Position numbers and translations under genes: made by a program. The notes beneath the pieces were generated by a model, which was not told the origin of the DNA, did not search any database, and was given only the letters and a program-made list of their open reading frames with translations. A stretch of 63,109 nt of DNA, the filler included, from Dimorphilus gyrociliatus (lineage: Eukaryota; Animalia; Annelida): assembly GCA_904063045.1 (NCBI GenBank). It is 5 parts of 5 records of this genome, joined end to end, with 100 filler letters (N's around TTAATTAATTAA, not from the genome) between each part and the next. Parts side by side here need not be neighbours in the genome. Positions count along the whole stretch, not along the records: positions 1 to 11,292 come from CAJFCJ010000085.1; 4 more parts are not named here. One strand, written 5' to 3'. Below are positions 1 to 11,292 of this stretch, piece by piece; within the stretch, counting starts at the first letter, position 1, and every line of letters starts with the position of its first letter.

Positions 1-190
1 AAGAACACAGAAAAGATGCATGTGAAATTTGTTACATCTTAGGCAATACCAGATGCTACTGAAGCAGGCCTGTGCTGCAGTGGCACATGTTGGCCATGTG
101 ATGTTCATCTCATCATTGTATTCTATATGTGTGATATAATAGTCTTTGATATTTTTGTTACTTGTGGATTATGAGACTGCTATATTTCGC
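1..190 (+). repeat. Fragment of the solo-LTR family (U3 part)
   Basis: TTGTTACATCTTAGGC...GATTATGAGACTG matches 53645-53770, 50045-50120 and the reverse complement of 8560-8700. Confidence 0.6.
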
Positions 191-1676
191 CCTCCTTCAA
201 TTGAATAATTTGGGTATGACATCAAGAATAGGACAAAAGCTTACAAGAAATATTTTTTTAACTATTACAATAAATGCAATTTGCTGGATTCCTTTCTCTG
301 TTTTAAGTGAATATATTAGCATGTTTTATAGAAATAGAAGAAGTTTCTGAAAGTGATAGAAAATGTCAACAACAATATGGTTTTATTTTACTATAACACT
401 AATGCAAAATCTGCAAGATACAGAAACCATCTCCAAATGTATGGTTTTACCCTAAGCCTAACCCAGCCCTTGTCACTTTCCAACCTTGTTTGTCACTCCT
501 AACAGTCAGATGGGTTGCCCTTAAGTACTAATCAATAGCTGTCTTTTTCTTCCTAACCATTCGTCAACCCAAAATCTAACCTTGAAATATGTCACTCGAA
601 GACATTGTCTATCAACCCCAGAAAATCTTGTCTTTTAACACTTGTTAATTAGCCCTATCATCAGATGGGAGCCTCTCCCAAGTACAAATTACCAGTTTTT
701 GTTATTCTTGCTAATCAATTTTCATGACAAAATCTTACTCTGAAATATCTGACTTGTGGACAGTTTCTGTCACACCCAGAAACTTTGAATAAATTACTGC
801 AATATAAAAAAGACACAAACAAAGAAAAATCAATTGAGTAATTAAAGGCTATACATATCTATTTCATTGTTTTGTTTTGTTTTTAGGCTATATATCATTA
901 ATGACTGATTTGGAAATCAATGAGAACATTTACATTTTTGTCATAATATTTTTCTTACCAATAAATTCTGTTGTAAATCCATTTATTTTCTTGTTGAGCA
1001 AATTAATTTCCAATAGGAATGAAGCATCTAAAAGAAGAAAGGCAAAAATGTTAACAAAATACTTTTTTTTTTCTAAATTTGAATCAAAAAAAAAAAAAAT
1101 TTTTTCTTAAAATCATTTTCATTTCTATAGAAAATTGGAAATACAATCAAAAATATCACAATTTCAATCGAAAAGTAACAACGAAATAGTATTAATTCAT
1201 TTTTAAATAATTAGACAATTTTTTTTATTACTTTTTCAGTTTTCAAATATCAAAGTGAAACAGAAGAAAATCAAATTATTCCAATTAGATATTTACATAA
1301 TTTTGAAACAGTTAAGATTGACTATAATCTGTACAAAAACAGTCAATACCTTATCCTATTGCAAGTTGTCCTAAAATCATTAGCATTTTTACATTTCTAT
1401 GAATTATGCCTTAAACAAAATTTGGGTATTACAAATATTGTTTTTGATGTAAATTATAATTTTTGAACTATCTAAATAATACAATAATAGCTCTTTTATT
1501 TTTTGAAGAGAATGTCAAAAAAGTATTATTTAACTGTCACCAACTTAACAAGTTTAAGTGTGGAACATGCAAAAGATGACATTAAGCAATTTGGGATGTT
1601 AGTTAAAAACATTCTCCAGAAGAGAAACTTTTTACTACAAAAAAAACACCTCACCTTGAAAACTGTACTACAATAG
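191..1676 (+). CDS. GRL101/RXFP-like GPCR, 3' part (TM6-TM7) with C-terminal pseudokinase-like tail; 5'-partial
   Basis: Exons ~191-306, 887-1049, 1131-1174 (44 nt), 1240-1448, 1509-1676 splice in frame with GT-AG introns. TM6 ICWIPF, TM7 LPINSVVNPFIF, tail YLILLQVVLKSLAFLH...NIVFD|...AKDDIKQFGMLVKNILQKR. Confidence 0.75.
416..777. mobile_element. Two degraded tandem Mutator-type MITE copies in a GPCR intron
   Basis: Similar to the MITE at 25484-25690 (CCCTAA motifs, AGATGGG core, ends ...TTTCTGTCACACCC). Confidence 0.55.
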
Positions 1677-1749
1677 AGAAATTATTATCCAGATATGTCA
1701 TATTGACCTATATTTAATTCTGCTTTGTCGTACTCTATCCATTCCTACT

Positions 1750-2644
1750 TATTTTATAACTGTATAGAATAAAAGCAAATATAGACTAAAATAAGACAAT
1801 TAACAAAAGAAACTAGTCTCTACCATCTAAGATTTTTAATTTAGAAAGATATTTCTGTAAGTTAGATCATGGACAAGGGTATAGTCTGGGGCAATTTTTT
1901 AGGAATTGTCAATCATTAGAATGTGTTAATTTACAAGAAAATGTACAACAAGGAGATAGCTTTGGAAATATTTGTAGTGGACTTGTGCCATCTTCTAATT
2001 CTATGAAAAAGCTTAGTATATGCTTCTGCTTTATAAACAATAAGCAAACTAAATGTATCACAGAAATGTTGTCAAACAGTACTGCTTTAGACTGATTTTT
2101 AATGGACTGAAATCATCATCCAGTACTTTAACAAATTAAAATTTTGTGGCTGTAAGTTAGATTCAAAACAGTTAAGATGCCTAGGAGAAGCTCTTTAAGA
2201 GTTTACTAGTGTAGTAACCATTGACCTTCTGTTCAACTTGTGTGATGGAAGTAAATATAATGAAAATTTTAAAGGACTAGAGTCCTCCTCTAGCTCTTTA
2301 AAATTTATTAATATGCAAACATTTGACATAACAGATATTGAAGCTGAATCTATAGCAAAAGGTTTAGAATGTTTTTATTCATTAGAGTCAATTCTTCTTC
2401 ATAGATATACATGAAGGTGTTATATGGACTTAATCAGATAATTGAAGGACTATACTCAAGAATTAATAGCTTGAAAATTCTGAAAATTACATCTTATGAA
2501 TTAGACAATAGCCAAGGAGATGTCCTTAGAAAATTTCTTGGCAATTGCCAAATATATATTCATATATATTACATCTATCATCAACATTTCTTGTTTAAAT
2601 CCTCTTATGAAATAAAAGCACGAGTTTTCCTAAAATGGGAATGA
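1750..2644 (+). pseudogene. RNI-like/NLR-type leucine-rich-repeat pseudogene
   Basis: Interrupted LRR-like peptides (LDHGQGYSL..CQSLECVNL; INSLKILKITSYELDNSQGDVL) with stops and frameshifts. Confidence 0.5.
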
Positions 2645-3178
2645 TTTTACCCAGAGACAAGTTTTCCCAGGGCAAGTTTTTCTGTTCCTGTCTTGTACAG
2701 CTATTGCTTTTCTTTAGCAATATATAGAATAGTACTCGTCCAAGTAGAACCAAGTTATACTACAGCAAAAGTATGGCTGTAAAAGATGAGTAGAGAATAA
2801 AGAACAAGGGTATCTTCAAAAAGATGGGGTTTGTATTCAGTAAAACTTTACTTTAAAATGCAAAAATGCTGACTAATTCATTTTTTGAATAGGAAATACT
2901 TTGATATAAAATACAGAAAATATTCAATAGCAGACTTTTAAAAAAACAGAAGAAACAAAGGAGCAATTCTAATAAGAATTCTGGACAAAACATCCCCTGG
3001 AGAAATCTTTCCTTGAATATAATTAAAAATGTCTTGTATTATTTATGATTGTGAAAAATATTTAATAAGTAATATTTATTAGAAAATGTATTTTGAAAAA
3101 AATGAAATGCAAAGTTTAGTTATTAAAATAGAAAAAATATTGAAGGATAATTAAAGTAAAATTAAAAGCAACAGTATA

Positions 3179-4831
3179 CAGCCGCGGTCATAAATATCTA
3201 TACATGAAAAAAAAAATTTTTTTTTTCTATAAAATAATTTTTTTTTGGATTTCTTCAACAAAATTGTTTGTTCTTTTTTTAAATATTTGTTGAAGAATAT
3301 GTTATAAACCAGAAAATGGATTTAGTTTACTGAAAAAAATATTCTTATATAAAAAAAAGAATGTTTTTTAATTCTATGTTTATTTATCATTAAAAATAGT
3401 CCCAAAAAAAATGGCCAAAAATATTTATATAAATTTAATTACATAGTTTGTCAAGGTTTTTTTTCTAAATTTTTGCGTTTTGTCTCAGTCTAAAAACTAC
3501 TTTTTAATTCTGTTTCCTTTATTGATAATAACTTGCCAAACTCTCTCCCCGATTCCTCTATATAAATTTTTCACAAAATCTCTATTGCTTGTATTGATTT
3601 TGTCCACCTCTTCCTGTATCCTGTCCCATAAATGGTCAAGGGTTTTTGGTGTTTGAATTTCATACACTTTAATTTTTAAATAACCCCACAAATTCTCTAT
3701 GGGGTTGAGGTCTGGAGAGTATGGAGGCCAATCAAGGACTTGAATTCCATTCTCCTCCAGGATATCCATTGTTACTCTGGCAGTGTGTGGGGGTGCATTA
3801 TCCTGCTGAAAGGTGAAGTTTTCTCCAAATTTTTCCCTCAAAATTGGGAAAACTGTTCCCTGAAGAAATTCGGCATAAATCTCTCCAGAGATGTTGGAGG
3901 GAAGTCTTTGGATAAAAACTTCACCATCTGAGGATATACACCCCCACACCATCACTCCTCCTCCACCAACTGGAAGCTTATCTCTAAAGAGCCTTGGCCT
4001 GTCATTGAGCTGCCAGGTTAACAGATGATCGGGACCATCCAGCGAAAACCTGGACTCATCTGTGAAGACCACATTTTTATATTCAACTTGGCTCTGAATC
4101 CATCCACCCAGTATATTTAATCGTGTGGTTTTTGCTCTTGCTGACAAAGGGCATACCTTCAAAATGGGCAGATACTTTGCTCCATTTTTATTTAGAATCC
4201 TTCTAATGGTTCTTTCAGAAAGATCCAGGCTTAAGTTATCCTTAATTTTTTTAGCAGTTGCCAACTCTCTTTTTTCCTGCAATCTTATGCATTCTCTTTT
4301 AATTAGTGACTTCAGTCTTTCACTGGCTTTGGATGGTCTTCCCCTTTTGTCAGGTTTTCCTGCTCTTTTGTTCTCACAGATATACTGGAGTGAAGGTTTT
4401 GGGATATTTAAGTCCGCCTCAAGTTCTTTATAGGTCATTTCAGCTTTTTTCGCCCTTGCTAGCTCTCTAATTTGAGAATGATATTTCATTTTGACAAAGA
4501 AATGTAAGTAATTATCTGCGGAGTCAGATTTGTTCTAAATTCAAATGTTCTAAAAACTATTTAGACAAAAAACATGTTTTTATAGATATTTATGGCCATT
4601 TTTAAATTATATAATTTAATTGCAAAAAGCACTTGTTGTCTAAAATTAAAAAAAAAAAGTACTTTTAAAAGCTGAAAAAAACAAATGTTGTATGAAATTA
4701 CATAAAATACCCTTTAAACAACATCATTCTATTTAAGAAAAATAATTTTATTTCTCAAAATTAGAGAAAAATGAGTTTTTAAAAAAAATATTTTCTTTTT
4801 TTTCATGTATAAACATTTTTGACCGCGGCTG
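3179..4831 (-). mobile_element. Full-length Tc1/mariner element (DD34E) with TA target duplication
   Basis: TA|CAGCCGCGGTCA...TGACCGCGGCTG|TA. About 38-bp outer TIR plus an inner repeat of the same motif (3412-3433, 4578-4598). Confidence 0.95.
3497..4489 (-). CDS. Tc1-family transposase, intact, 330 aa
   Basis: HTH plus GRP linker; catalytic TDESRF, QDNAPPH and SPDLNPIE with 34 residues between the second D and the E. Confidence 0.95.
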   Translation of the reverse strand: MKYHSQIRELARAKKAEMTYKELEADLNIPKPSLQYICENKRAGKPDKRGRPSKASERLKSLIKRECIRLQEKRELATAKKIKDNLSLDLSERTIRRILNKNGAKYLPILKVCPLSARAKTTRLNILGGWIQSQVEYKNVVFTDESRFSLDGPDHLLTWQLNDRPRLFRDKLPVGGGGVMVWGCISSDGEVFIQRLPSNISGEIYAEFLQGTVFPILREKFGENFTFQQDNAPPHTARVTMDILEENGIQVLDWPPYSPDLNPIENLWGYLKIKVYEIQTPKTLDHLWDRIQEEVDKINTSNRDFVKNLYRGIGERVWQVIINKGNRIKK

Positions 4832-5181
4832 TATTTTAGATATGTTATCCAATAGTTGTAATGCTGTTATGGAAGCAACATCAAATTCAGCCCAATATTT
4901 GAAAATATCACTTTCAATTCTCTTATAACATTTCTTTTGAAGCCTGCAGACTTTTCCATCACTCAAAAGTTTCTTGTACAGATTAATCAAATCTGACTCT
5001 CTTTTTAACTCATCTATTAATAAGTAGAAGGAGCCTTTAGCATATACATTTCTATTCGGGGTCAGGTGCAAATGTACCTGTTAGCAAATATTTCCAACCA
5101 TGAAAACATTTTAGGAAAGGGTTAGTTTGAATATTTTGATCAATTTATTGTTAGAGGGGCTCCAATTTAGGGTTAGGGAAT

Positions 5182-6116
5182 TGTACACATACATTCGTCA
5201 GCTATATTCTACAATAGAGAAGTAGTATTGAACCAGTATTGTACTATGCAGATAGCACTGATAAAGATAAACAGTAGTGACCTAGTTTCACATAGGGTAG
5301 TGCATACACATTATGCAGCAATAAAACCTATTGAATTATTTAAAGAATATTTGCTATTTGCAACCTAGCATTAATATTACAATTTATTAATCCATAAATT
5401 TATGATTTCCAACTAAAACTAGTTCAATTAATTATCAATTATGCTTAAATTCTAAGTTTAGATTATATTGACTATTCAACAGTATTGTATACACAATACT
5501 GTTCTTTTTAACATGCATTAATCAGATATACTTCCTCCTTATATGCTGATGCTAAATTTACTAACTCAATCAATTGAATATCATTATTAAGGTAGAATAT
5601 AAAAACGGTCAAATATACAATCTACATGTTTTCTTCATTGTTGGACTTGTCCTACTAAAATTGTTACATCTTATGCAACTCTCCAACCTGAGAAATTCAA
5701 CTATTATTTAGAAGAGGAAAACAATAAAAACATGACCATATTTACAACTTTTCTTTGTCTTCAAATGTTACTTTTGTTTTTGTGAACATTGAAATTTGTG
5801 AACTATCAATCCTTAAAAGAGTATATAAACCCTACGAAATTAACAGTTGACAGTTCACTTTTCTAACTGTCAGCTAGTTGTTTAAACTAGCTTGTTTAGA
5901 ACTAGAAGCTCATTTTACTCAATACATATTCTTTGCACGAAATACTGGTGTTTTGTTAATTAATTTCTACCGAAATTGCCTTTGTTAGACTATTTGTGGA
6001 CAAACTTTAAAGGTTCTATTTGTTTGAGTACTTTGGCAAGTTGGTAAATGATTGGAAAGGACGATTACAGTTGTGACGAACCAGAAATTCCTACAATTAC
6101 AATACAACAAAGTACA
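5182..6116 (+). mobile_element. Solo LTR (935 bp), subfamily A
   Basis: TGTAC...GTACA termini, perfect 5-bp TSD GGAAT, TATA-like TATATAAA near 5823; near-identical copy at 47544-48478. Confidence 0.9.
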
Positions 6117-8216
6117 GGAATATAAAAAACACAGATATAACACTCAATTTCAGATATATTAAGGTAGGCTTCAACCTGCCATGGGTACGTTTGCACCCCC
6201 ATCCTTTCTATTCAACCTATTATGCCAGCCTTCCAAGTCATTGTTAGTCCTAATTGTTTCTCTGTAGACTGAACAAGTACTTGGAACAAAGAAATCTCCA
6301 TAAAACCATTGCTTATCCACATAGTCAATTAGCTTGCTGAGGAATTTTTTCTCAGATACTTTGTTTCTGAGAATATCAAAGGTAGCAGGGATGACATCAG
6401 TTTTTAGAAATGGTAATGCCAGTAGTTTCTTCATTATCAAATACTCCTCTTCTTTCTTCTTATAAAGAGAACTATAACCTGGTTCTCATATTTTTCTATA
6501 GACTGCTTGAGTTCAATGAAAATAGCATCCTCTGATATTTGCATCAGGGTAAACAGACAGAAGTGCTTTCCAAATTGACTTTTCAAAGTCAGTTATGAAT
6601 TTTTGTGGCAAATGACCATCTGTTATTGCTTTAATTTCCTGTTTTCCAAACAACATTGGTTTGTTAATATTACATTTATAGTTTTTAACCAATTGCTCTA
6701 CTCACCTTGAACAAAAGCTTATATGCTTTCTTTGATTTTGAGCTCATAAATGCAAAGACCAAAGGAACTTGCTTCAATTCACTGTTCTTTTTTACAAATC
6801 CATGAATGGTAAATAGCTGATAAAATGGGTCCTTAACATATTTAAAGGTTCTATCTATAAACCACATCTTTCCATGGGATAGTAATTTTACTTGACTTTG
6901 TGTAGAGAATATAATTATTCTTTCATTTTCTCTGCAAATATCATTTATCAGGAAATTATCTGGAACAAAATTTTTGTCAAGAGTGAAGTATAAGCCATCT
7001 GGTTCATTAGGATTAAACTGCTGTCTTGTTCTATTAATAAGTCTACAACAGCTATCAATAGATGGAATAGCAAAATTTGATTTTGGAACTTCACTGAGAA
7101 CATTTTCAGCCAAACATTTTCCTGATGTTATTTTATCATTTTGACCACTTTCTGTTAATTTGTGTCTAATTCTTATTTCCATTTCCAGATTATTATTTCT
7201 CTCATGAATATGATTCATTTTGCCAAGGATGAAAGAATTATCTCTTTGGGAAACTCTTGCAGGACACTTCATGGATTTATTTCTGACACTACAAGTCCAT
7301 TTAACTGTGTTTGCAGTCTTTTCTTTTACAGTATAACTGTATCCTTCATGCAAAAGGAGATTTTTTCCTTTTTGACTCATTCCTTCCAATATTGTAAATG
7401 TAGGGTCCATTTCATCTATTCCTTGAATATTTGAGTTATCAAAAGAGTTTTCCATTAAATCATCTTGAGAGACATTTGTCAAATGGTTTCCATTATTTCT
7501 ATGATCAGATAATTCTTGGTCATTCCCTACAATTTCATCTTTTCCACTTCTTTCTCCAGTAAAAGGGTTATCTTCAACAAAAGTAAGTCTAAAACAGGTT
7601 ATTCTATTTAATGAGACAAAGCAATTCTTTTTGGAGATATCAGTGCAGGTGGAACATAAATATACATCAGACACTGCAAATATTTAGAAATAAATAAAAA
7701 TGATAGAATAATAAATGTGAATATTACTTGAAATGCATTTTTTATGAAAGTTTAACTGATGAGAGCAGAGTGAGCATTTGCTTGTGAATTTTCTTTCAAA
7801 TATTCTATATCTACACATTTGACAGTAGGGAGCCATCACCTGATGAAAAATTAGAAAGTGGACATGACACAATGCCCAAATAAAGATTAAGCAAATAAGT
7901 TACTTTTTTTAAATAAATACCTTGGGGGTATGAAAATCTTTGATGAAATATCTATACCAAAATCACCTTGTTTTAAATCAGAAACAATCATTACAGCATG
8001 AAGAATAAAAATTGTAGTAAAAAAAGATGGCTACCAGGTATTAAAAACAGGAAGTGGACAAGACTTCCTGTAAAATAGTACTTTTTTCTTTAAATCAAAT
8101 AATTCTCATTTTAGGTATATTTAAACTAGTTTGAAACACTTTTTATACTAATATTTAATTAGCAATTCAATAAAACATTATTAAGTACAATAAAGAAATT
8201 ACTTCACTTTTCTAGC

Positions 8217-8954
8217 TGTACTTTGTTGTATTGTAATTGTAGGAATTTCTGCTTCTTCAGAACAGTATTCGTCCTTTCCAATCATTTATCAATTTACCAA
8301 AGTACTGATCCAATTAGAACCTTTCAAGTTCGTCCACAAATAGTCTTAACAAATGTAATTTTGGTAGAAATAATTCAACAAAATACCAGTATTTCGTCCA
8401 AAGAATATGTATTGAGTAAATGAGTTTCTAGTTCTAAACAAGTAAGTTTAAACAACCAGTTAATGGTTAAAGAACTGAACTGACAAGCTGGGGAAATGCA
8501 TTTCCTTTTATACATTTTCCAAAGCTTGGGTTCAAGTGGTCAAAGGATTACAAAGTTGAAATCTGACAGTCTCATAATTCTCATGTAACAAAAATATGAA
8601 AGACTGTTATATGACACATATAAAATATAATCCTAAGATTAGGGCCACATGCCAAACATGTGCCACAGCAAACAGGCCTGCCTCATCAGCATCTGGTGTT
8701 TGACCTGCATCTTTTCCATGTTCTTTGTTCCTTTGTTAATTCCCCAAGTAGCCACCATCTGTTACAGTCAAAGAGTCTATTTCTTACGAAATAGAGTTCT
8801 TTCTAAAGTACTAAAAGCTAACTCTACGAAATAAAAGTCTTTCTAAAGTTCCACCACTATAATTCCTACGAAATATAAGTATTTCTATAGTTGCACCAGT
8901 CTAATTCCTATAAAATAGAAGTCTTTCTAATGTACCCTTATATCTAAGTGCACA
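8217..8954 (-). mobile_element. Solo LTR (738 bp), subfamily B
   Basis: TG...CA termini and perfect 5-bp TSD CTAGC (8212-8216, 8955-8959). Shares the 3' ~270 bp with subfamily A; U3 contains tandem ~45-50-bp repeats. Confidence 0.9.
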
Positions 8955-8961
8955 CTAGCTC

Positions 8962-9045
8962 AAGAGACAATCTGTCCAGGGGACGTTTTGTCCAGGAGAT
9001 TTTTATCAGGGGATGTTCTGTCCAGGGGACATTCTGTCTGGGTCC
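8962..9045. repeat. Tandem ~16-bp repeats (CCAGGGGACRTTYTGT), probable MULE subterminal array
   Basis: About 5 degenerate units; same motif as the MITE terminus at 34207-34229. Confidence 0.65.
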
Positions 9046-9253
9046 CTACTAATAATACCATTTATATTATAGATGTCATTAGTGGTATGCTTTTTTGAAT
9101 AACAAATATTTGAGAAATCTGATGATTGAGTGAAAAAGAAGAGAAGTGTCAAAAACTTGGTAGAGCTTTACTCATAAAACCCATTCTAAAAATCATTTAG
9201 TGTTTACGTTTCATATTGTTTGTTTTTTTTTTATTTCAGTGTATTAGACTTTA

Positions 9254-11292
9254 TTAAAGATTATTTTGAACTGAAATATAGGTTTGTCTCTTCTGCAGAA
9301 TTTTTTTTATAATTGTACCTATTGAAAGAATGTCTTGCTTCTCTTTCTCAGTAGTTAGCTTATTAAACAAAAACTTTTTGAGCACATACAATGAATAAAA
9401 TGTCTGAAAATGATAAAACAATTTAAGAAAGACTATTTGCTATTTTCTCGTAATTTTTACATTATAGTGTAAATCATCAAATAGAATTTCACTATCAAAT
9501 GAAAGATTGTTTCTATGACAATATTCAATAATCATCAATATATCTCTTGTCAATTTCAAATATTCCAGTTTTGAAAAAAATTGGAAAGATAGGAAATTTT
9601 TTTCCAAAAATTTCAGATGGTATTCATTTTTTAGCATGATATAACCATTAGAATTTGAAAAAAATGTCATTACTAAAAATATGAAGAGGCAAATCTATAG
9701 CTCTCTCCAATTACTAAATAAAAACTGGTAATCTCTGTACTATACTTACAATTGCCAAACGTTGTCTTTGTTATATTTCGCATTACTTTTTCCCTGTGGA
9801 GATGAAAGGTTATAATTTGAAAGAGGAGGAGGAGAAGCAGAGAGAGAGAGAGAGAGAGAGAGAGGAGTGAGCAATACCTTTCCATTTCTATCCTTTTTCT
9901 CCTTTTGAAGAACAGATCTTGAATGTCAGAAGAAGAATAGAAAAAGGGATTCAATAAACTATTTATAGGTATTAAAGTTGAAACGATTATAGAATAGACA
10001 TCATTGCTCATGTGAATATCAACAGAAAATGAAATAAGGCCTATATATTAAAAATCAAAAACGTTTCTGTTAAAACTTTTGACCCAATTTAACAACAACA
10101 ATCACCTAGAGTTGATATTGGCAACCAACAACCCATATTTGTAGCTATTATACAAACAACAGTCCTAAGTAATTTTTGAGATTTTTCCTGTCTCCTTTCA
10201 CTAGATTTCATCTTTGAAAGTGAATTTTTAGCACTATTCAGCAGATTTCCATACAAGACACAAATTATAACACTGATCAGCAAAGTTGTAACATTAAAGA
10301 TAATAAATGAATAGAACCATCCATATTCCTTTTCACTTCTTATATGAATGTTAAAGCAGATTGGGGATTTTCCATAGACATTCTGAGAAAGGGAGGGAGG
10401 GAGAGAGAGAGAGAGAAAGAGGGAGAGAGGGTGCATTTTAATATATGTCTTAAATTGGTAAAAATCAAAATGGAGGTATTTTTTTTACTGTATATAATGC
10501 AAGTGGCAAAATTGATGTTAGAAAGACTTGGAAAAGTACGAAAATAGCTATATATTTACAGAATCTCTTGATTTTTGATAGTAAAAAAGGAAATACAATT
10601 GCAAAATATCTTTCTGCAGTTATTAATAAAAGACTTTCTGATGAAAGTAGCAGTGAAAAAGTCATAATTGTTCCTAAAATTTGACAGAATACACTCTGAC
10701 GCCATATTGGATCATTTTCAATAAAATTATTCTTGTAGAAAGTATCAACAGCAGCAATTGATAGAAAGTGAAAAGATGTTAGAAAATCACCAATATTTAA
10801 TATTAATCTAAATGACTTTGAAGTTGAAACAAAGATTAGTGATAGTAAGAATGAGATTAGATTAATAATTAATCCAATTAAGCCAAAAATCCAAAAGAAT
10901 CCTTTGATTAGGTTTGAACTTAATAAATTTGAACATGTATTGAACAGTGATGAAGATGGTTGACAGCTAACTCTGCTACTAACATACTTCCAAGTTAAAC
11001 AACACAACCTGTATGATTTGCTAATAATTTCTTCAACTCCCTGAATATATTTTGCAATGTTTTCACTTTCATCAACTGGGAAATTTGTGTTGTTCAAGTG
11101 TAAAATTCTCAATTCTCTTAGCAATTCAAATGACCTTGAACCAATATGCAAAATATTACATTCGGCCATTTTGAAAGTTTCTAAATTTTTAAAATATCGT
11201 AAACTGGAATTTAAATATTTAATAGGATTATTTGAAATGTCCAGGTATTTTAAATGGGAACAGCCTAAAGCCACTAATGAGTTTATATCTTT
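9254..11292 (-). CDS. LRR-7TM GPCR (GRL101/RXFP-like) with C-terminal pseudokinase-like domain; 5' end cut by contig edge
   Basis: Exons 11292-10489, 10382-10106, 10040-9878, 9793-9750 (44 nt), 9672-9461, 9403-9254; all GT-AG and in frame. LRRs, TAERY, CWLP, NPFFY, then LTRDILMIIEYCHRNN and KQDILSIGTIIKKIL; AATAAA follows the stop. Confidence 0.85.

Follow-up and report, generated by a model that had tools for sequence, protein, structure and literature searches.

The receptor genes and their class

The window analysed here is a stretch of 63,109 nucleotides (nt), filler included, made up of five parts of the genome of the annelid Dimorphilus gyrociliatus (GCA_904063045.1). Its first part carries, on the minus strand, the 3' portion of a receptor gene whose predicted cytoplasmic tail appears to derive from a protein kinase. 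Positions 1-11292 correspond to G000:C85:50757-62048, the final 11.3 kb of a 62-kb contig, and the assembly searched in this work comprises 78 Mb in 349 contigs. The G+C content of this DNA is ~30%, and the introns of the minus-strand gene are only 57-106 nt long, which identifies the source as a compact eukaryotic genome. The exons of this gene and of a second, plus-strand copy within the same part are listed in Table 1.

The 5' side of the minus-strand gene is lost at the contig end, which truncates exon 1. All exon borders were re-derived; every intron is of the GT-AG type, and the phases fit throughout (0, 1, 2, 1, 0). A previous interpretation of this DNA (hereafter the sequence-only reading) had proposed that three GT-AG exons carry on the frame beyond the seventh transmembrane segment (TM7), and both its coordinates and its frames proved exact. 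The frame is open throughout exons 4-6 and yields a tail of ~154 amino acids (aa) beyond the NPFFY motif. An AATAAA signal at 9255-9250 overlaps the stop codon TAA at 9256-9254.

The window gene displays the hallmarks of a rhodopsin-family seven-transmembrane (7TM) receptor, as ERY (at the end of TM3), CWLP and NPFFY, corresponding to the E/DRY, CWxP and NPxxY motifs, are all read in its translation. In Pfam, exon 2 matched 7tm_1 with 35.1 bits (cut-off 30.5), and exon 1 matched 7tm_1 (E value 1.2e-5) and LRR_8 (E 4.7e-6; 26.7 bits, just below the cut-off of 27, the exon being truncated). A leucine-rich repeat (LRR) ectodomain thus directly precedes the 7TM part, and in the paralog at locus L038 the LRR_8 match reaches 43.1 bits. 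In the window gene, the contig end falls before any region corresponding to the LDL receptor class A (LDLa) repeats, i.e. the Ldl_recept_a matches found in L038, L045 and L050 (the plus-strand neighbour); taken together, these three loci contain Ldl_recept_a, LRR_8 and 7tm_1. The order in L038 is several Ldl_recept_a repeats, LRR_8, 7tm_1 and tail. A protein-language-model search with the N-terminal half returned 'Relaxin receptor 1' and 'GRL101-like' clusters as neighbours. The L038 exon encoding LDLa, LRR and TM1-4 matched no protein at E<=1e-10 within 0.55-1.75x its length, a threshold that was probably too strict.

[quoted passage not shown] The sequence-only reading had raised the possibility of a new receptor class. 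The family is better described as a greatly expanded and lineage-specific subfamily within the type C LGRs, new in its tail.

Table 1. Exons of the two receptor genes in the first part of the window. Kinase elements are named after their predicted equivalents.
Gene	Feature	Positions	Strand	Borders and frame
Minus-strand gene	Exon 1: last LRRs, Cys-rich hinge, TM1-TM4	10489..11292	-	open frame 0, donor ACA/GTAAAA
Minus-strand gene	Exon 2: TM5, intracellular loop 3, TM6 (CWLP)	10106..10382	-	acceptor ...CTCAG, donor G/GTGATT, phase 1
Minus-strand gene	TM7 exon: NPFFY and basic helix-8 region	9878..10040	-	163 nt, donor AG/GTATTG, ends in phase 2
Minus-strand gene	Exon 4: first half of the tail's long N-terminal helix (kinase alphaC)	9750..9793	-	44 nt, acceptor ...CACAG, donor GTAAGT
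Minus-strand gene	Exon 5: end of alphaC, beta4-beta5, alphaD, alphaE (YCH motif, invariant His), degenerate catalytic-loop region, beta7	9461..9672	-	212 nt, acceptor ...TTTAG, donor GTAAAA
Minus-strand gene	Exon 6 (last): beta8-like strand, short loop, long alphaF-like helix (DILSIG...KKILQKR), stop	9254..9403	-	acceptor ...TTCAG, stop TAA
Plus-strand paralog	3' half, same exon plan	887..1676	+	AG/GT borders, open frames
Plus-strand paralog	TM7 exon	887-1049	+	163 nt, borders
Plus-strand paralog	Exon 4	1131-1174	+	44 nt, borders
Plus-strand paralog	Exon 5	1240-1448	+	209 nt, borders
Plus-strand paralog	Exon 6	1491-1676	+	borders

Recurrence of the tail exons in the receptor family

The tail exons recur throughout the genome. 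Exon 5 used as a single sequence found 51 places; as a profile it gave 149 or more matches in six frames at E<=1e-3, only ~10 of these 149 containing stops. For exon 6, 64 six-frame matches were obtained at E<=10, at least 11 of which sit ~30-330 nt downstream of an exon-5 match. All 29 aligned paralogous copies of exon 5 share the phase-1 start after AG and the phase-0 GT donor, and 25 of 30 loci have a same-strand TM7 and/or TM5-6 exon 10-1235 nt upstream, mostly 75-600 nt. This recurrence, combined with the conserved phases and the upstream 7TM exons, goes far beyond chance.

In several copies the tail is joined to the receptor, or its exons to one another, without introns. At L038:3872-4246, exons 4, 5 and 6 are fused as one exon of 125 codons just after the TM7 exon; in L032, L033 and L055, exon 5 runs into exon 6 as a single open frame; and in the genomic locus L052 as well as in two public open reading frames (ORFs), P0008 and P0023, TM7 runs intron-free into exon 5 in one frame. 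The ratio of nonsynonymous to synonymous substitution rates (dN/dS) of the tail exons, evaluated in pairs whose dS of 0.25-1.1 excludes both saturation and near identity, is ~0.2-0.4. The tail is under purifying selection. Given the conserved phases, the upstream 7TM exons, the intron-free copies and the dN/dS values, it appears to be a selected, integral part of these receptors.

The second copy in the window follows the same exon plan, with an exon series of 163/44/209 nt versus 163/44/212 nt in the minus-strand gene. Its exon 5 (donor at 1449) was recovered in the profile search as G000:C85:52001-52204, i.e. window 1245-1448 (E 8e-8), the end of its TM5-6 exon occupies ~150-306, and further upstream the contig carries four or more LDLa repeats and the first LRRs (locus L050). 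The middle of this gene, from the LRRs to TM5, falls in ~2.9 kb that read N just before position 1 (L050 2390-5250, about 47.9-50.7 kb of G000:C85). Only two copies sharing the tail are present within positions 1-11292; the sequence-only reading had counted three paralogs in the window as a whole. In the TM5 region of the plus-strand paralog (window 1-350) the frame changes near 150-175 beside a T5 run, which reflects either a real frameshift, in which case this copy is a pseudogene, or an assembly error at the homopolymer. Its intron between TM6 and TM7 measures 580 nt (307-886), far longer than the others.

Relatives with the same architecture are found in at least two other organisms. L045, from one of these, carries LDLa, LRR, 7TM and tail on one contig of 3.6 kb and shares only short stretches with the present assembly, at 74-82% identity. 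P0008, which originates from a Tara Pacific coral long-read metagenome (ERR14224704), is 24-42% identical to the copies of this assembly. Tail identity among paralogs is likewise low (20-50%).

Further observations were made on individual copies. L051 (G000:C109:8500-13000) contains at 1212-2501 (+) an open frame of 430 aa in which LDLa, LRR and TM1-2 run directly into the kinase-like exon; it is probably a dead copy with an internal deletion. The exon-5 copies of L025, L028 and L029 (G000:C205, C150 and C173) are 99-100% identical in protein, and represent either duplicates of very recent origin or haplotigs that were not collapsed. Small contigs of 50-200 kb hold most members of the family.

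It could be argued that exons 4-6 lie outside the receptor messenger RNA (mRNA), as a separate small gene, as alternative or untranslated 3' exons, or as part of a pseudogene copy. The integrity of the window gene cannot be demonstrated as it is cut by the contig end, its exon joins are predicted from genomic DNA, and part of the family is decaying, to judge from the apparent TM5 frameshift of the plus-strand paralog and the rearranged L051. However, all five introns are consistent in frame and phase, the exon series of 163/44/~210 nt recurs in paralogs, and TM7 and tail share one uninterrupted ORF in P0008, P0023 and L052. Moreover, the stop codon that closes exon 6 lies partly within a poly(A) signal, and no in-frame stop past the TM7 donor would make a plausible earlier end. 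We therefore regard a tail outside the mRNA as very unlikely.

Evidence for a truncated kinase core

The relationship of the tail to protein kinases was evaluated with two profiles, one built from 25 exon-5 peptides (A1) and one covering the whole tail (A3). Searched against the sequences of the PDB, A1 returned 55 rows, nearly all of them protein kinases, and A3 returned kinases in 33 of 33 rows. The best match was CaMKII (E 0.002-0.005), and further matches comprised CDPKs, Tribbles, MK2/3, MNK2, titin kinase, BRSK2/SNF1 and CLK. The profile matches are collinear from beta4 to beta7/8 and in the right register. By sequence, the nearest relatives of the tail thus appear to be kinases of the CAMK group. 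When 41 family pieces were run in Pfam, Pkinase was the only family matched by more than one piece (6 of 41, best E 8.4e-5).

When A3 was searched exhaustively against 1.84 billion representatives, 56 proteins were obtained, of which 55 are ORF fragments of 57-220 residues; those inspected are members of the family from raw (Logan) assemblies. The sole match beyond the family's own fragments was P0047 (559 residues, E 2.8e-4), a genuine Pkinase from a different, gene-dense eukaryote. In the alignment with P0047, the xCH motif of the family falls on the 'LH' of kinase alphaE and the residues that follow fall on HRDIKLEN. Comparison of A3 with the kinase domain of P0047 by hhalign gave a probability of 95.8% over 110 columns and paired DIxSxG with DVWSLG. 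P0047 was found on the public contigs L041-L043, from three sequencing runs, among tightly packed genes (a transfer RNA synthetase, Cu/Zn SOD, Snf7). The ORFs around it were called whole, without interruption, and its host is a different, very compact eukaryote.

Fold prediction gave consistent results. AlphaFold2, given no templates and no sequences other than those of the family, modelled the tail of L038 with a confidence (predicted local distance difference test, pLDDT) of 92.9 over 110 residues and of 95.6 over 125. All matches listed by Foldseek for these models in the PDB are kinases (E 0.013-0.014), the top matches including RIO1 and Bud32. The VIA search, which is independent of Foldseek and covered 48,161 chains, gave kinases or pseudokinases in all 50 rows listed, with 100-108 of 110 residues aligned for the top matches Rad53 (Z 10.2) and RNase L (Z 10.1); PEAK3 (Z 8.9), NFR5 (8.7) and IRAK3 (7.7) were among the others. 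In the fold search of ESM-Atlas, nine of ten rows were kinase clusters and the tenth was unnamed, with template-modelling scores normalized by the query (TM by query) of 0.59-0.66 and root-mean-square deviations of 3.1-3.6 Å. The models contain the alphaC-alphaF core of the kinase fold. The sequence-only reading had placed the tail exons on kinase subdomains IV-V, alphaE and alphaF, and the PDB profiles, P0047, Pfam, hhalign and the predicted fold agree on this placement. Kinase ancestry of the tail is thus considered shown by sequence and models, since every method gives the same family and the same register, even though each score is modest.

The predicted order of elements is an alphaC-like helix, a beta4-5 hairpin, a short alphaD, a long alphaE, a degenerate loop, beta7-8 and alphaF. 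The alphaC equivalent is a helix of 20 residues encoded by exon 4 and the start of exon 5 (helix 2-21 of the L038 model, pLDDT 95). The alphaE equivalent is a long helix that ends in the invariant His, beta7-8 is modelled as two or three short strands, and the alphaF equivalent is a C-terminal helix of 27 residues that starts with DIxSxG and ends with KKILQKR (helix 98-124 of the L038 model). The protein ends 5-15 residues past this helix, so that alphaG-I are never reached. Only ~35-45 residues separate NPxxY from the first helix of the tail, which leaves no room for the beta1-3 sheet and the N-lobe; neither the Gly-rich loop nor the VAIK lysine is present, and the models start at the alphaC-like helix. 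The kinases matched in the VIA search take 150-215 residues for the same alphaC-alphaF span, from which it follows that the activation segment is gone from the tail. By sequence and model, the domain would therefore consist of ~125-130 residues, comprising the kinase core from alphaC to alphaF only.

The tail lacks the catalytic HRD, Lys, Asn and DFG signatures. The columns equivalent to HRD never read HRD, showing K/N/E/D, G/K/N/S and E/D/Q, respectively, with an acidic residue at the third in 15 of 25 copies. The Lys-equivalent column is Ser or Thr in 18 of 25 and the Asn-equivalent column Asp or Asn in 16 of 25, and no conserved DFG was seen in the aligned family copies. Since the N-lobe, HRD, DFG and the activation segment are gone, catalysis by the tail appears excluded. 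The absence of the Gly loop, VAIK lysine, HRD and DFG asserted by the sequence-only reading is borne out by the P0047 alignment and these column counts. Its description as a catalytically dead, mostly C-lobe remnant holds as to the loss of activity, and the remnant is even smaller than stated, spanning alphaC to alphaF without activation segment and alphaG-alphaI. The 'VKI' that follows HYN in the window gene was considered as a kinase beta8 motif and rejected; it is read-through of the GTAAAA donor, and nearly all aligned copies have a Val codon at that end of exon 5, since the intron begins with GT.

Several observations weigh against a kinase-derived tail in the window gene. The homology is visible only by profile or fold, with marginal individual E values (0.002-0.005 for PDB, ~0.01 for Foldseek). 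Exons 5 and 6 of the window gene alone gave only chance matches and no kinase in Pfam, and the single L038 tail gave no match by phmmer against the PDB. HMMER and hhalign place the gap between beta7 and alphaF differently, and because of this ambiguity it is uncertain whether beta8 or a remnant of DFG is retained. The models represent the tail of the L038 paralog, in which it is intron-less, rather than that of the window gene, whose splice junctions rest on comparative evidence. Finally, a core without the N-lobe sheet and alphaG-I exposes surfaces of alphaE and alphaF that are normally buried, and the model may therefore lack a partner.

These marginal scores, together with most VIA Z values of 7-8, a common range for VIA, and with the single-sequence searches that found nothing, might suggest that the tail exons are real and conserved while encoding an unrelated small alpha/beta domain, the kinase matches reflecting composition and helix-strand packing; this genome is AT-rich, and its proteins are accordingly rich in K, N and I. 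Against this, independent methods converge on one family in one register, with nearly all A1 rows and all A3 rows from the PDB being kinases, and the only match beyond family fragments among the 1.84 billion representatives is a genuine kinase. Furthermore, hhalign pairs the two best-conserved motifs of the family, xCH and DIxSxG, with the kinase motifs of the alphaE His and the alphaF Asp, and the fold agrees with kinases at a TM by query of ~0.6-0.66 and 3.1-3.6 Å. An unrelated domain is thus extremely unlikely.

The best-kept positions of the tail are the alphaE His (25 of 25 copies) and the alphaF Asp, and DIxSxG...KKILQKR is strongly kept. In kinases, this His and this Asp (His158 and Asp220 of PKA) are known to stabilize the core. 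As the two best-kept positions are core-stabilizing residues, the pattern suggests that selection keeps the fold and not the chemistry. A kinase-derived tail might also be a decaying relic of an ancestral fusion between an LGR and an active kinase, now without function of its own. The tail has lost every catalytic motif and roughly half of the kinase domain, and paralogs are only 20-50% identical, as would be expected of such a relic. This is nevertheless unlikely in view of a dN/dS of 0.2-0.4, frames that are open in most of the at least 149 copies, an invariant His column and a strongly kept alphaF motif, the same architecture in at least two other organisms, and a domain that folds confidently and compactly in the models.

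Comparison with known systems, proposed role and other elements

The closest known receptors are GRL101 of Lymnaea and RXFP1/2, which share with the window family the LDLa repeats, LRRs, Cys-rich hinge and, in a 7TM part of the rhodopsin type, ERY, CWxP and NPxxY. Known members of the type C LGRs have short, poorly conserved tails, whereas the tail described here is a conserved and, by prediction, folded domain present in at least 149 divergent copies. In earlier work the LGR tail was set aside as poorly conserved (PMC4079206), and we found no LGR with a pseudokinase tail in the literature searched. Similarly, no named or full-length protein carrying the tail was found among the 1.84 billion representatives, the public relatives being ORF fragments; as this library may lack records of the present genome, the result does not prove absence.

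Fusions between G-protein-coupled receptors (GPCRs) and kinases are described as GPCR-PIPK (RpkA), oomycete and amoebozoan GPCR-TKL (tyrosine kinase-like), choanoflagellate GPCR-TKL/K, and sponge and choanoflagellate GPCR-TK (tyrosine kinase) (PMC12716839, PMC5784254, PMC6033456). Reports of them are so far confined to oomycetes, amoebozoans, choanoflagellates and sponges, and none is functionally characterised (PMC12716839). As in the window family, a 7TM part is followed by a kinase-fold domain in one polypeptide. However, their kinase parts are lipid, TKL or Tyr kinase domains recognised by Pfam/InterPro on 7TMs that are not of the LGR type, whereas the window family combines a class A LGR 7TM with a truncated, CAMK-like dead core that is missed by standard scans. 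No complete, scan-recognised kinase domain follows the 7TM part here, the kinase portion being truncated and below threshold.

Reduced or inactive kinase folds are known from other contexts. The KIND domain (Spir, PTPN13, KNDC1) is a kinase-fold fragment dead in catalysis that is reused for protein interaction. It is alike in concept, but it keeps the whole C-lobe including alphaG-I, while the tail ends after alphaF; none of the 41 family pieces matched Pfam KIND at E<=1. The kinase-homology domain of receptor guanylyl cyclases, NFR5, Tribbles, PEAK3, RNase L and IRAK3 likewise use kinase folds for regulation or docking, and Tribbles is also among the profile matches of the tail to the PDB, RNase L, PEAK3, NFR5 and IRAK3 among its structural matches. 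In contrast to the tail, which has neither the N-lobe sheet nor alphaG-I, these pseudokinases keep both lobes and usually the nucleotide pocket. RIO1 and Bud32 resemble the tail in having a short C-lobe without a classical activation segment, but they have a full N-lobe, retain the catalytic residues and are enzymatically active.

Together, these data make it likely that the window gene encodes a type C LGR whose cytoplasmic tail is a non-catalytic, CAMK-like kinase remnant that may act as a docking or regulatory module. The docking or regulatory role is proposed by analogy, with KIND domains, Tribbles and the kinase-homology domain of receptor guanylyl cyclases as precedents. As the class A switch motifs are intact, the 7TM part would still switch conformation on ligand binding, like a class A GPCR. 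The tail would form a rigid module tethered ~20 residues after helix 8. Its possible roles include recruiting a partner, offering a docking surface, pairing with a genuine kinase, or occupying the receptor's cytoplasmic face as long as the ectodomain has not bound ligand; the end of alphaF, which is basic and amphipathic, might rest on the membrane. In its size and divergence, the family resembles a recognition repertoire of the sensory or immune type more than a set of hormone receptors.

A class A LGR with a conserved kinase remnant that is predicted to fold confidently would be invisible to ordinary domain annotation. In this compact genome, the receptor has multiplied to ~150 copies or more. 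The tail would also represent a natural example of a kinase fold cut to alphaC-alphaF, ~125 residues in length, that is still kept by selection, and a candidate for a new coupling of a 7TM receptor to intracellular partners. Being small and folding alone in silico, it is directly testable, and the alignments A3 and A5 provide a profile for screening other unannotated genomes. A bolder proposal, which we consider tentative and rather doubtful, is that, in over 150 LDLa-LRR receptors of an animal lineage, a folded mini-pseudokinase has taken the place of the C-tail of a class A GPCR, which is disordered and phosphorylatable, and that this has created a signalling mode of its own. If this were true, the alphaC-alphaF core could pair with a partner kinase and switch it allosterically, as in KSR-RAF and HER3-EGFR, or could instead plug the G-protein site until ligand binding, and a large sensory or immune recognition repertoire would be wired directly to kinase pathways.

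Other elements were noted in the first part of the window. Short LRR-like ORF fragments broken by stops (e.g. 2238-2414) lie at 1860-2640 on the plus strand, one of which was run in Pfam and gave no match; this region may be a decayed LRR gene. A Mutator-like element occupies 5847-8486, with terminal inverted repeats of ~270 nt (5847-6117 versus 8216-8486) that are 83-89% complementary. Its interior encodes FLYWCH and a MULE transposase on the minus strand in split ORFs (6171-6440, 6513-6692 and 6685-7674), and the element is probably inactive, as the transposase is split over several ORFs. At 3497-4489, also on the minus strand, an intact ORF of 330 aa encodes a Tc1/mariner-type transposase (DDE_3 E 7.8e-19, HTH_Tnp_Tc3_2), with a G+C content of ~40% versus ~30% around it.

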